Assembly: GCA_000320545.1 (NCBI GenBank)
Contig: ADNK01000041.1
Span: forward strand, 33,061-97,060
Direction of reading: 5' to 3'
DNA length: 64,000 nt
Source: Bigelowiella natans CCMP2755
Taxonomy: Eukaryota > Protista > Cercozoa
In this document: in pieces, positions 4,855 through 59,469 of the stretch
Layout of the letters: each line of letters begins with the position of its first letter
How positions within the stretch are numbered: position 1 is the first letter of the stretch
Made by a program: the position numbers and the translations under genes
The notes under the pieces: model-generated
The model's database searches: none
What the model was told of the DNA's origin: nothing
The model's input: the letters and a program-made list of their open reading frames with translations, nothing else

Positions 4855-5582
4855 GTGCGACGGTGGGTGCACATCCTAGATCTATTACCAATGGCTTGGA
4901 AACATATATACCCGTACCATGGTATAATGGGTGCGCTGCATGCCGCACATGTGGAGCACTGATTATGCATTGTTGTTGCGTTACGCCAGCGCATTGTCCG
5001 TGTTTACGACTTAATGATTTTTTTCAGTTCCACTGTATATATTGACACACACTCTCCCCGGCTTGCACTGCTAAACTTTGGTTCGGCCTATGCATTCTCT
5101 GATGTCATAGTGCTATCGCGATCATACTGCACTGCTTAGCATCGGCTACTGCTGTACGTGGCCTGCGATGTCATGTTATAATGTGTTGTGTGCAATCGTG
5201 CTTGTTTAGATGTCCGGCACAAAGAACATCGTGAAATTGCTGTGACGCATGCAGCGTGCATAGCATGTACGTATGCCAATAGGTGCGGCTCCAATCGAAG
5301 CGGGAGATCCATGTGCGTAATAAGCGGTCACCTTGGAATGGTGTTAACTACACAATGGCAAACATGCGTCACACACAAGCACATATGCACCGCGACTACG
5401 TACAAAGCACGAAAAAATGTACAAGGGTTGTCATAAGATAAGTAAATATACTACGTGGCCTAATGCGCATGCACTATATCGGAGTTTGTTCGAAGCCGAG
5501 CATACTTTAAGACTGATGGAATGCCACATTACCCATAATTGTGGGTAGAACGGTTCTATATTTCCCTTTATTATTACTCAAC
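4855..5582. other. Convergent-gene spacer enriched in TGCA/CATG/TAGC words
   Basis: Lies between the CSP41a-like stop and the hydrolase stop; for example gacgcatgcagcgtgcatagcatgtacgtatgc. Confidence 0.55.
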
Positions 5583-7937
5583 TTAGGAAGAGAAGAAAGC
5601 CAATGCCTCCTTAGCTACTAAATCAGGATACTCCACGAAGTTCCTCTGGGCTCCAGGAGTTGCAATTAAAGGCACGCCTCTGATGAAGGTATAGGGAGCA
5701 TGTACAAAGACAACATAGGAAGAACCATCCGCTTATTACTTTCTTGGACCAGTATGCTATTCAAGCGCTTTTGTGCTCTCTCCCCCCCCCCCCCCCCCCC
5801 CACCCCCTCTCTCTCTCTCTCTCTCTCTCTCTCTCTCTCTCTTTCTCTCTCTCTTTCTCCCCTTTCTCGCTCACACGTCGCACTCACCTCTCAGTGAGAA
5901 AGTCGAGGTCCCGTTCAAAGGCTTCTTGCTCCTTTGCGCCAACACACACAGCGAGGCGTACTGGAACTCCGCTTTCATATGCAGATGCGGCATCCTCTCG
6001 ACGGGGGTATGGGTCTGTTCTTCCCACCAGAAACGCACACTTACCCCATCGTTCCCCCTCAGCTGCGAACTGACGGTTTACCTTCATGGTGACAGTAATG
6101 ATTATGGCGATCATGGTGGTGATAGATCCACGACTACAGAGATGATGGACCAATATGCATCAGAATCTGCGTTGCTAATCATTTTACTAGCAATGGAGTA
6201 GCCGCAGCATGAGAAAGCTTACTACCTCCACGGCCTCGGGGGTGACATTGGACGGATCTTCGAATACGTGGCTAAACGCGCACACAGACGCAAAAATACA
6301 CGGCATGCTTTTTATCAGATCGGTGAACGATGAAGATATATTCGGCTCTCGCTATCGAGGTGTACGAATGCTATCCTGAACGTAAATCGTCGGCACAGGT
6401 CCTCTATTACTTCTATGTCAAACCAAGCTTCGAGAAACGCAGAAAAAGCGTAAGAATTAGAGCCGTGGCGCGGAACATAATTCTTGCGTCCTTCTTACTG
6501 GGAAGAAATTCCAATTGATATTATATATATATATATATATATATATATATAACAGCGACGCCCGCTCCGCTGGCACCTCCAAAACGCAACACGTTCATCA
6601 AGTACCTGAGCATGGCCTTCTTGATCGATCCTTCCGAGCATTGTGAGGCGTGCACAGCGCTCCCCACTGGGTCGGGCAACTTGTACGCTGCCGCAATTCC
6701 TACATAGGAGGAAGAAGAGTGCGAGACAAACAACAATGATGACGTATCTGAGTGTATCGCTGTAGAGAGCACTCGAACAGCTCACCATCTTCCTCGTACT
6801 CTTCCTTTCATCGCAGTATCATCAGCTAGGTTAGTCGGGTGTTTACCTCCGCAGAGCCCATCAATCAGCAACGGAACGACAGCATTCTCCTTTATGAGGA
6901 AAGTCAATTGTAAGATCACTGCCCTCCTTATTATTATTATCATCTATCGCCGCGACTTCGTTAGAATTCATAGAGTGTATGAGGAAAGGGAACAGGTTTC
7001 ATTCTCTCTTTTTGGACCCGCTTACATGTTGACGACAAGTTGGTCAGGGTCTTTCACTGCGAGGGAAGGAAAGGACAATGATGGACCCCAATCTGTCGAT
7101 GTGGTTTGTATGAGGCGGTACCTTGTTCTTCATCTTCACTGTTGTGAGAGGGCCACGATATGTCGGGTTGAGAAGGAACACGTTTCGAATCATCTCAGGG
7201 TGCTGCTTAGCTGCATCGAGTACATAGAACCCCGCATGTCCGGCACTAACAATATTGATGGCAGCTCCATTGTACTCACTGTTCAGATGGCTGAAAAACT
7301 TTGCCAGAAATTCACGAAAGAATTCTGGCTCGTAAGCGTCGAGGTCGAGCAGCGCTGCATCATTTAGTCCATAGCCCGGGAGCTCCGTCAGGATGGGTAT
7401 AATCTCGGGGGATCCTTCCGGGGCATTTATTGTCATCGAAGCGGCTAGATCTGCAAATGTAGCTCGAGAAGGAACGAACGAAGGGGTGGCGAGGAAGAGC
7501 GTTGGAACTGCTTCACCGCGCTTGGTCGCCACACTTTCATATGTGTCGTACGATATGAGGACCCGCCGTCCTCCAACCATCGTCTCAAAGCTTTTCCGCG
7601 TTCCTTCCGCGGACCCAAGAGGAGATTTCCGAATCTCAGTGTCGTGAACGTTGTCAGGGGCCACCGCCAGCGTGGAGCCCACTACGAGCGAACTTGTCCT
7701 GCTTCTTCGCTCGGGATGATGACGGCGGCCGCTTACCGTACTAACGCGGCAGGGAGACACATAAGATGCAGAACGTGCAGCGGTCCTTGAAGAAAGGATA
7801 GTTGGTAGATTTACAGAGCAAGCCCCGCTGATGAGGAGAATGGCTGTGGCGAGACCTACAAGCGCTATGCTTTTGGCATGCCAAAGCGTCGATCTTCGTC
7901 GCTTCGGTGTATGGAATGGCGCTGCCGATGTGATCAT
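5583..7937 (-). CDS. Plastid-targeted alpha/beta hydrolase-fold protein (cyanobacterial/plant At1g74640-like family)
   Basis: First exon has a bipartite presequence, then ELPGYG, SAGHAG and LLNPTYRGPL. Later exons read GIAAAYKLPDPVG, SHVFEDPSNVT, CAFLVGRTDP and ..RNFVEYPDLVAKEALAFFSS*. Confidence 0.8.
5781..5857. repeat. Intronic poly-C plus (CT)n compound repeat
   Basis: Direct reading. Confidence 0.9.
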
Positions 7938-58245: not shown

Positions 58246-59469
58246 GCTAATTTGAATTTCAACAGATTCGCATGATGCCACACGCACAATAGCAAAACAT
58301 CACTGAACATGTGTTGTCGTACGTACAAGTAGTGATTTGTTCTGCTTACGACACAGCGCATCGATTCTAATGTGTGCACATTGCGCAGCAGCCCTACATT
58401 ATCTAACGCATCCAGATGGGCAGCAATGAAATCGCTTCTAGCGCTTGCGCATGCATGCGCGGAAACATGTCTGGCATGTGTGTACGCATGGCCACATTTT
58501 CACTTTTAGAGATGCACCTATGCTTGCATGCTAGCATGCAGTCACATCTAGACATGACTTGCTAGCTTGTGAAGATGTGATAGACATGCAATGCACCACA
58601 TTGCTGTGTCCATTGTGGATCAACGCAACACATGCAATTTTGATGGACGTCAAGGTGCGCATTTTGAGGAGGCCACCGACACACCTGTCTAGCTGTGCTT
58701 GTCTAGATTTAGACATCATTTTGCACTAGTGCAGGCTAGCTAGCTAGCTAGCTAGCTAGCTAGCAGGCACGCGAAATTGCAAGTCACAACGAACATCAAA
58801 CAGAACCCACAGGGCTGGCTAGCTGGAGGGCTCTGCTGGTTGTGTGCAAGCTAGCAAGATGCAAGTCCATCTGTGCAGTCTTTCAACATCTGTAGTCTGC
58901 TAGCTAGCTAGTCTGGATAGCTGGGCACATCCAGACATGCTACAGCATAGTGCAAATTTTGTTTCATGTGTGTGTGTTTCACACGTGCACTTTATGTGTG
59001 TGTGTGTGTGTGTGTGTGTGTGTGTGTGTGTAAATTTGGCACGCACTAGCGCATGGACGACTGCTAGTGCGCATGCGTACAGACACAAATCTGAAATGGA
59101 GATTTTGCACCTGCTGCCTGCCTAGCCATGTTAGTCGCACACAATCATCAGGCTAGCAGGGGCCATACATAGCATGTACTAGATGGGGCTCTGAGATCAT
59201 GCACCCATCCATCTACGCATTTCTAGACTTTCTAGACATCAAATGATGACACGATGCGATGGGCAGTGGGCATCACAACATGCATGCTGTTCGAGGAATT
59301 CGACGAGCATGGCACACATACACCATCGCGACCCGCGACCCAATGCGCACATGTTTGCACTGGCATAGCCCACATACCAATAGCCATGCTAGCATATCTA
59401 GCTGTACATTCTGCTCCCACATAGACATGATCATCACGTACACCTTGTTTGTACCGCCATGTAAGTGGA
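58246..59469. other. Convergent spacer enriched in CTAG/AGCT/TGCA/CATG
   Basis: CATGCTAGCATG at 58527, CACATCTAGACATG at 58543 and (GCTA)7.5 at 58735. Confidence 0.8.
58735..58764. repeat. (GCTA)n self-complementary microsatellite
   Basis: 7.5 perfect units. Confidence 0.95.

Follow-up and report, generated by a model that had tools for sequence, protein, structure and literature searches.

Scar-like X4-CTAG-X4 structures in the spacers between convergent genes of Bigelowiella natans

Convergent genes, poly(A) sites and motif-dense zones

The stretch analysed here, which we refer to as the window, comprises 64,000 nucleotides of the Bigelowiella natans CCMP2755 genome (contig ADNK01000041.1, positions 33,061 to 97,060), and our subject is the DNA of seven spacers in it that lie between the 3' ends of convergent genes. 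These spacers almost certainly carry an insertion-scar structure, X4-CTAG-X4, in which a four-nucleotide word (X4) stands in direct repeat on either side of a constant CTAG. An earlier note, made from the letters alone, had described the seven spacers as a distinct class of DNA built from self-complementary tetramers, and had proposed a bidirectional termination or 3'-end signal, a chromatin boundary or a mutational fossil of cytosine methylation as possible reasons for it. The window has a G+C content of 46% and numerous short introns, in agreement with the published figures for B. natans of 45% GC, 8.8 exons per gene and introns of 184 bp (PMC12730881). The spacers are numbered here as follows.

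Spacer 1: 4855-5582
Spacer 2: 12331-12939
Spacer 3: 17860-18860
Spacer 4: 23304-24419
Spacer 5: 40400-41292
Spacer 6: 50235-51902
Spacer 7: 58246-59469

Two of the window genes are matched exactly in marine eukaryote transcript assemblies. The coding sequence of an intronless gene for a Zn2Cys6 protein is present on a 964-nt Joint Genome Institute (JGI) contig, and a DegP-like protein of 383 amino acids is encoded on contigs of five samples, at 99.7-100% identity to the window, its next-best named relative being from the chlorarachniophyte Amorphochlora amoebiformis (51% identity). The tail-to-tail arrangement is supported for six flanking genes by transcripts, a transcript-derived protein or Pfam matches; in five of the six the evidence for orientation extends to the terminal open reading frame (ORF) adjoining the spacer, and for the gene to the right of spacer 2 it concerns the strand alone. 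The six genes, with the two poly(A) sites that could be mapped, are listed below.

13387-14083, minus strand: gene to the right of spacer 2, placed by the Marine Microbial Eukaryote Transcriptome Sequencing Project (MMETSP) protein P0121 (99% identity) at 14083-13568 and 13473-13387; stop and poly(A) site uncertain
16581-18057, plus strand: DegP-like transcript, left flank of spacer 3, with one intron (17175-17239) and a 3' untranslated region (3'UTR) of about 198 nt
18056-18057, plus strand: DegP-like poly(A) site; five colinear transcript contigs (L002-L006), of which L002 ends in poly(A) here
18861-22517, minus strand: PPR-repeat gene, right flank of spacer 3, with Pfam PPR_2 matches in both large ORFs
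38862-40399, plus strand: prolyl-4-hydroxylase-like gene, left flank of spacer 5, whose last ORF matches 2OG-FeII_Oxy_3, the upstream ORFs having been assessed by eye
42470-50234, plus strand: myosin gene, left flank of spacer 6, with Myosin_head matches ordered along the strand and pieces of the motor domain from 42.5 to 47 kb
51804-51806, minus strand: Zn2Cys6 poly(A) site; contig L001 encodes exactly the Zn2Cys6 protein and has poly(A) where the genome continues
51906-52757, minus strand: coding sequence of the intronless Zn2Cys6 gene, right flank of spacer 6, with a 3'UTR of about 99 nt

For both flanks of spacers 4 and 7, the right flank of spacer 5, the left flank of spacer 2 and for spacer 1, the gene assignments are based on ORFs, weak Pfam matches or a home-made exon-chaining gene finder, which was conservative at first, over-chained after splice matrices had been added, and is used here as weak support only.

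The spacers do hold one class of DNA, as the earlier note had claimed, and it can be found without knowledge of their coordinates. A blind sliding count over 300-bp stretches gave six strong peaks, at spacers 2 to 7, and a weak one at 4.4-5.4 kb, and an order-3 Markov classifier, from whose training the zone under test was left out, recovered the same six intervals. Elsewhere in the window the classifier called a 61-bp island at 5162-5222, which lies inside spacer 1, and the single base 2905 beside a (TA)n array. The class is a sharp annotation mark that predicts convergent 3' ends in this window without false positives. The zones so delimited, none of which has a strand, are the following.

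4860-5480: weak zone of spacer 1, of CATG/TGCA/GCATGC-type composition, with one CTAG and no scars; classifier about -9 to +3, against a median of -22 elsewhere
12570-12903: zone A, spacer 2; classifier 12570-12859 (maximum 26.9), dense motifs 12658-12903; 2 perfect scars
18060-18790: zone B, spacer 3; classifier 18018-18763; 5 perfect scars; starts just past the DegP-like poly(A) site
23462-24396: zone C, spacer 4, strongest at 23923-24222; 1 perfect scar; (TA)20 array at 23572-23612
40504-41047: zone D, spacer 5; classifier 40504-40978 (maximum 47.9); 6 perfect scars
50435-51783: zone E, spacer 6, the largest; classifier 50438-51783 (maximum 61.7); 18 perfect scars; stops some 20 nt short of the Zn2Cys6 poly(A) site
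58342-59407: zone F, spacer 7; classifier 58342-59407 (maximum 50.7); 15 perfect scars

The zones sit between the 3' ends of the convergent transcription units and begin 15-60 nt downstream of both mapped poly(A) sites; none of the five independent DegP-like assemblies extends past 18056-18057. Because the zones start past both mapped cleavage sites, the class is inter-poly(A) DNA rather than 3'UTR, which contradicts the suggestion that it acts as a 3'-end processing signal within the mRNA. Both poly(A) sites share CTTTTTA 47-51 nt upstream and ACATCT 7-12 nt downstream (17998-18068 and 51788-51858), a pair that occurs nowhere else in the window; as a general 3' signal this pair was rejected, being absent from the other spacers and known from two sites.

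Spacer 1, which the earlier note had already called the weakest case, proved to be so by its weak sliding-count peak, its one CTAG and its lack of scars. Its left border at 4855 is doubtful: colinearity with the paralogue P0122, from the same transcriptomes, indicates that an epimerase-like gene on the plus strand stops at the TAG at 3972-3974, and the stretch 3975-4850 is not zone-like. The sequence 3972-4854 may contain a small plus-strand gene (ORF start MGCCAFK, near 4470) or a long 3'UTR before the stop at 4854, and should the small set of ORFs near 4470 prove to be a genuine gene, 3975-4469 would be a tandem junction lacking the class. The end of the gene to the right of spacer 2 is also in doubt. 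The protein P0121 (213 amino acids, 99% identical where aligned) ends shortly after a Glu run derived from the (TCT)12 array at 13337-13373, and the genome ORF containing its match (minus strand, 12943-13503) continues to 12943; between-strain differences in repeat length may shift the frame, such that the true stop and the 3'UTR are uncertain.

With regard to the rest of the window, a partial map gives about 15 genes that strictly alternate in strand, with seven convergent and about seven divergent junctions and no verified tandem pair, several of the genes being supported by ORFs or weak Pfam matches alone. If genome-wide, such alternation would be far from random gene orientation. Weak matches to both of the MABP1/WDR62-type WD40 domains follow the order expected of a single long gene on the minus strand running from about 38.2 to about 24.4 kb (32472-32912 and 37772-38068), and a further weak match of this type lies on the plus strand at 55783-56067; the two genes may be paralogues on opposite strands. 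Pfam searches on about 70 window ORFs mostly gave no match, a protein search using a PPR exon gave none, no contig matched a candidate small gene or P0121 in exact look-ups, and metagenome scans with the myosin tail and the last exon of the prolyl-hydroxylase-like gene returned no match and no third poly(A) site. A self-trained codon model for the gene map was dropped after it had drifted onto low-complexity repeats.

Composition of the zones

For comparison of composition the seven intervals (7,239 bp) were set against the remaining window (56,761 bp), with the following results.

CTAG: 17.5 per kb in the intervals, 1.6 elsewhere
CATG: 15.5 per kb in the intervals, 4.1 elsewhere
TGCA: 16.6 per kb in the intervals, 5.0 elsewhere
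AGCT: 9.5 per kb in the intervals, 3.8 elsewhere
GCATGC: 4.4 per kb in the intervals, 0.42 elsewhere
GCTAGC: 50 copies in the intervals, 0 elsewhere

Against 500 dinucleotide-preserving shuffles the z-scores are 20.7 for CTAG, 22.1 for GCTAGC, 11.9 for TCTAGA, 6.2 for GCATGC and 5.1 for CATG, but 2.9 for AGCT and 1.6 for TGCA. The tetramer enrichment therefore exceeds dinucleotide composition for CTAG, CATG and the hexamers GCTAGC, GCATGC and TCTAGA, whereas the excess of AGCT and TGCA is largely a dinucleotide effect. In enrichment, GC-TA-GC and GC-AT-GC stand far above the other hexamers of the form GCNNGC, a few of which are raised 3-6 fold from low counts. The impression that other kinds of DNA are not enriched was borne out by counting: CTAG occurs at 2.1 per kb in head-to-head spacers (approximately delimited), at 0 in defined introns and at 1.1-1.2 per kb in three gene bodies, and the two mapped 3'UTRs are also at background level.

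The dinucleotides of the spacers depart from expectation, with observed/expected (o/e) ratios of 1.71 for GC, 1.49 for CA/TG, 1.22 for AT and 0.55 for CC/GG. The raised CA/TG ratio (1.11 elsewhere) is what a fossil of cytosine methylation, in which CG decays to TG/CA and CWG to TAG/CTA, or a hypermutation directed at TpA in intergenic DNA, would be expected to leave. However, CpG is no more depleted in the spacers than elsewhere (o/e 0.83 against 0.88), TpA is more frequent in them (0.92 against 0.74), and point mutation cannot give rise to the four-nucleotide duplications described below. We thus consider this explanation barely credible; what survives of the earlier note's 'mutational fossil' is the idea of a mutational record, which comes close to the scars, and not methylation as its cause.

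The class is strand-symmetric, as had been proposed, with no GC or AT skew across the zones. The spacers are not copies of one repeat, such as a miniature inverted-repeat transposable element or a satellite, since blastn of each spacer against the window found microsatellite matches only and no long shared homology; scans for tRNAs and Rfam families found none in the spacers. Identity at lag 1 is low in the spacers (0.18 against 0.25), with peaks at lag 4 and lag 8; outside them, the window has the coding period of three. Purines and pyrimidines alternate at 61% of steps in the zones against 48% in the rest, and alternating runs of at least 10 nt occur at 6.6 against 2.0 per kb. Single-strand folding is predicted to be stronger in the zones (-34.5 against -24.7 kcal/mol per 120 nt, p=5e-9; z -0.89 against -0.05), in part more so than composition accounts for. 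No long hairpins or cruciforms, i.e. inverted repeats of at least 14 nt, were found in the zones except those built on (CTAG)n arrays, there is no excess of palindromic extension around CATG, TGCA or AGCT, and no long-range period-4 phasing between motifs was detected beyond immediate tandems. Within genes, and there probably in introns, long arrays of (TA)n, (CA)n and (CT)n abound (e.g. 2921-2983, 29531-29571, 36941-37003 and 63913-63974), and tetranucleotide (GCTA)n arrays occur in the zones only. The zones are two-layered, with CTAG scars on top of a CATG/TGCA-rich alternating background that stands alone in the weak zone of spacer 1.

Direct repeats around CTAG

The CTAG sites of the spacers form 99 (CTAG)n blocks, the flanks of which follow a simple rule. 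At 38 of the 99 the four nucleotides on one side are repeated identically and in the same orientation on the other, where permutation of the flanks predicts 1.63 such cases, and at 51 at least three of the four positions match (10 expected, p<0.0004); the 90 CTAG blocks in the rest of the window include no case of perfect four-nucleotide flanks. The 38 perfect cases comprise 25 different X4 words, self-complementary in nine cases and not so in 29, and one repeated motif can thus not account for the scars. The rule is specific to CTAG: no flank duplication was found around CATG, TGCA, AGCT, GATC, ACGT, GTAC, GCGC or TCGA. A scan of four-nucleotide direct repeats at separations of 0-12 nt peaks at a separation of four, and the word enclosed in the spacers is CTAG in 45 cases, followed by its rotations GCTA (17), TAGC (14) and AGCT (7), all others occurring at most four times. 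Iterative removal of scars recovered 47 events, compared with 1.1 in order-3 and 3.8 in order-5 Markov simulations; with thirteen other palindromic cores it recovered 0-4 events, and in the rest of the window it recovered none among 91 CTAGs. The repeat does not extend past four nucleotides, the 4 nt outside each X4 being unlike CTAG, which rules out a simple tandem duplication of 8 bp. The following sites illustrate the structure, none having a strand; further examples are CAGG-CTAG-CAGG and CTTG-CTAG-CTTG.

18325-18336: scar ATCG-CTAG-ATCG
40730-40750: overlapping pair of scars, CATG-CTAG-CATG and then ATGT-CTAG-ATGT across its right-hand copy
51126-51137: scar CAAG-CTAG-CAAG, with direct flanks and not palindromic
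58732-58767: array CAGG-(CTAG)7-CAGG, with the outer duplication intact

Scars are thus nested as well as single. Arrays with an odd number of units retain perfect outer flanks in three of five cases for n=3 and in the one case for n=7, as expected from re-insertion into CTAG. Of the cases in which three of four flank positions match, eight of 13 mismatches are transitions, and the decay of older scars by point mutation fits both this and the commonest one-mismatch cores. These cores, found between four-nucleotide repeats in small numbers, are CTGG (3) and CCAG (2), i.e. changes of TA to TG/CA.

The position frequencies of the duplicated word give C-A-T-G as the favoured target. This CATG-like preference accounts for the share of GCTAGC among the CTAG sites of the spacers (50 of 127) and for the recurrence of CATGCTAGCATG. 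The earlier note had taken self-complementarity as the organising principle of the class, but the flanks of CTAG are direct repeats and not inverted ones: in addition to the 38 of 99 perfect direct cases, G(CTAG)nC blocks with non-self-complementary two-nucleotide flanks are direct in 12 cases and inverted in none. GCTAGC is hence a by-product of CTAG insertion in CNNG-type targets. When X4 -> X4-CTAG-X4 events are simulated together with mutation in a toy model, the densities of CTAG, GCTAGC and TCTAGA and the rise of identity at lags 4 and 8 are reproduced, but not the density of CATG and GCATGC or the very low identity at lag 1.

These results bear on the proposal that the motifs are a selected signal, in which GCTAGC, GCATGC and the like would bind a dimeric factor or form hairpins in read-through RNA and so act from either side as a roadblock, a chromatin boundary or a terminator. 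Every one of the seven convergent junctions has the class and no other part of the window does, its zones start just past the poly(A) sites and are predicted to fold more strongly, and a precedent exists in budding yeast, where bidirectional termination zones are centred on the self-complementary UAUAUA (bioRxiv 10.1101/2022.11.02.514956). Selection for palindromes does not, however, predict arbitrary direct-repeat flanks around CTAG; the only inverted repeats of 14 nt or longer are those on (CTAG)n arrays; the number of motifs varies about tenfold among spacers, with almost none in spacer 1; and the class is missing from the one convergent spacer seen in Amorphochlora. As an account of the class this proposal appears distinctly improbable to us, though an origin as scars may be compatible with a secondary function of the zones. 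Of the earlier note's strand-symmetric signal serving two opposing units, the symmetry and the location in the gap are upheld, whereas a palindromic mechanism is at odds with the direct-repeat flanks.

Neutral microsatellite dynamics, in which (GCTA)n and (GCAT)n arrays grow by slippage in the one part of the DNA free of constraint and then decay, would account for an excess of period-4 tandem events (41 against 17.8 expected, 26 of them of CTAG or CATG types), for the identity peaks at lags 4 and 8 and for one perfect (GCTA)7.5 array, and slippage is indeed real for a minority of the blocks. Nonetheless, 83 of the 99 CTAG blocks are single units rather than head-to-tail arrays, decay of arrays cannot make the left and right units equal in 38 cases with 25 words, and introns, rich as they are in (TA)n, (CA)n and (CT)n arrays, have none of this class. 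We regard slippage as a very unlikely origin of the class as a whole.

Possible origin of the scars and comparison with known systems

Repeated 8-bp insertions of the type X4 -> X4-CTAG-X4, in which a four-nucleotide target is duplicated and a constant CTAG is left between the copies, would be expected from a 4-bp staggered cut followed by the retention of a constant remnant. A cut-and-paste element with 4-bp target-site duplications and CATG-like (CNNG) targets that lands only in non-transcribed DNA could produce them if its excision leaves CTAG behind, e.g. by re-joining of the donor flanks via self-complementary CTAG overhangs derived from the element ends. Re-insertion into or beside old scars would build odd-numbered CTAG arrays and nested scars, each event would add 8 bp to the spacer, and palindromic hexamers would arise as by-products, CTAG in a C..G target giving GCTAGC and in an A..T target TCTAGA. 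As in an excision footprint, the direct target duplication has a fixed length, exactly 4 nt, and the short remnant is constant, CTAG being found in 45 cases and the next unrelated word in four. We infer from these features a mobile element as the agent, the element ends as the source of CTAG, and targeting rather than selective filtering as the reason for the distribution; that the scars are the footprints of a cut-and-paste element, or of a related staggered-cut process, confined to non-transcribed DNA, is a reading to which we give about an even chance.

Several observations weigh against it. No intact donor element, with CTAG ends, a 4-bp duplication and terminal inverted repeats, was found in the window except for (CTAG)n arrays, Pfam searches found no transposase there, and we know of no transposon family that leaves CTAG; literature searches on the motif class, on CTAG footprints and on B. 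natans transposons returned nothing relevant. For footprints, a density of about 10 perfect scars in each kb of zone is very high. Gene bodies are without scars despite their many introns, in which 8-bp scars should be harmless, and the model consequently needs a hypothetical targeting mechanism. The duplication is seen at just 38-51 of the 99 blocks, even-numbered arrays (nine blocks with n=2) are not predicted, and perfect scars cover 376 of 7,239 nt. In addition, the enrichment of CATG and GCATGC, the alternating purine-pyrimidine runs and the scar-free weak zone of spacer 1 are left unexplained by the scars.

Scars might also form by the repair of breaks, with no mobile element involved. 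Some enzyme of the host, for instance a type II topoisomerase or a domesticated transposase or nuclease, would make cuts staggered by 4 nt where convergent transcription causes torsional stress, and error-prone repair would then duplicate the overhang. The duplication of exactly 4 nt, the position of the zones exactly between converging polymerases and their richness in alternating purine-pyrimidine runs would all fit, such runs being preferred cleavage sites of topoisomerase II, which when trapped gives rise to 2-4-bp duplications in yeast. Filling in a 4-nt overhang, however, yields X4-X4 with nothing between the copies, which leaves the constant CTAG unaccounted for, and four-nucleotide tandem duplications other than the CTAG and CATG types number 15, which is no excess over shuffles (17.8 in all). 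Repair without an element is, in our judgement, unlikely, yet not negligible.

If the scars are what they appear to be, each convergent gap records intense and precisely targeted insertion and removal of DNA, which would point to a new element or enzyme that cuts with a stagger of 4 bp and leaves CTAG behind. Its targeting would recognise DNA that lies between poly(A) sites and is not transcribed, and would amount to a natural 'safe harbour' system. Accumulated scars would also be a simple reason for convergent spacers being longer than divergent ones here. A testable mutational account would thereby replace the functional story of palindromes as a bidirectional signal.

Comparison with a relative is at present limited to one locus of Amorphochlora (35.7 kb, with called genes), in which a single convergent spacer has about 600 bp of telomere-like repeats in place of the class, and 1 scar-like site is found against about 0.24 expected by chance. 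The class is thus not obviously common to chlorarachniophytes, though one locus in a genome of 27% G+C says little. The spacer concerned (A. amoebiformis, L007:29070-29665) adjoins a gene with a hAT dimerisation domain, and its interstitial CCCTAA repeats are mixed with a CCCGACA variant over the approximately 600 bp.

In budding yeast, the bidirectional termination zones are centred on UAUAUA, are about 120 bp long and have the cleavage sites inside them (bioRxiv 10.1101/2022.11.02.514956). The two systems are alike in having a class of self-complementary motifs between convergent genes, the yeast zones serving both directions. They differ in that the zones described here are 0.25-1.35 kb long, lie beyond two mapped cleavage sites, and have motifs that bear signatures of insertion.

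Excision by piggyBac, and the removal of internal eliminated sequences (IESs) in ciliates by domesticated piggyBac transposases, proceed through 4-nt 5' overhangs with precise re-joining. The 4-nt stagger is shared with the structure reported here, and a single constant tetramer would result at the junction if complementary 4-nt overhangs were re-ligated; in contrast, piggyBac restores a single TTAA without duplication, whereas in B. natans both target copies stay and CTAG is added. A more radical possibility along these lines is that the scars are junctions left where elements that reside nowhere but in convergent gaps are excised again and again, perhaps as part of a programme. Were this so, a rhizarian alga would have an IES-like system with a domesticated transposase, the inter-poly(A) DNA would be its landing pad, each site would be left with X4-CTAG-X4, and the sequenced genome would be a record, or a processed version, of a larger element-bearing genome. 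We know of no evidence for programmed elimination in chlorarachniophytes, and we give this possibility a slender chance.

The closest likeness is to the footprints of cut-and-paste elements such as Tc1/mariner, whose excision leaves the TA duplication with a few nucleotides from either end of the transposon between its two copies. Both consist of a target duplication, a short constant self-complementary remnant and a target duplication, to which nested and adjacent events are added here, and a palindromic remnant would come from inverted ends. The differences are that the duplication in B. natans is variable and 4 bp long instead of TA, that the remnant is CTAG and that no donor element is known. 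We are not aware of any parallel for a density of about 10 scars per kb, or for confinement to the inter-poly(A) DNA of convergent genes. With respect to such confinement, safe-haven targeting is known from mobile elements in compact genomes, as with the Ty elements of yeast and the tRNA-gene-targeted elements of Dictyostelium, which likewise restrict their insertions to a narrow class of non-genic DNA; those elements, however, target RNA polymerase III genes, promoters or heterochromatin and leave whole elements in place, whereas the convergent gaps of B. natans hold 8-bp scars.

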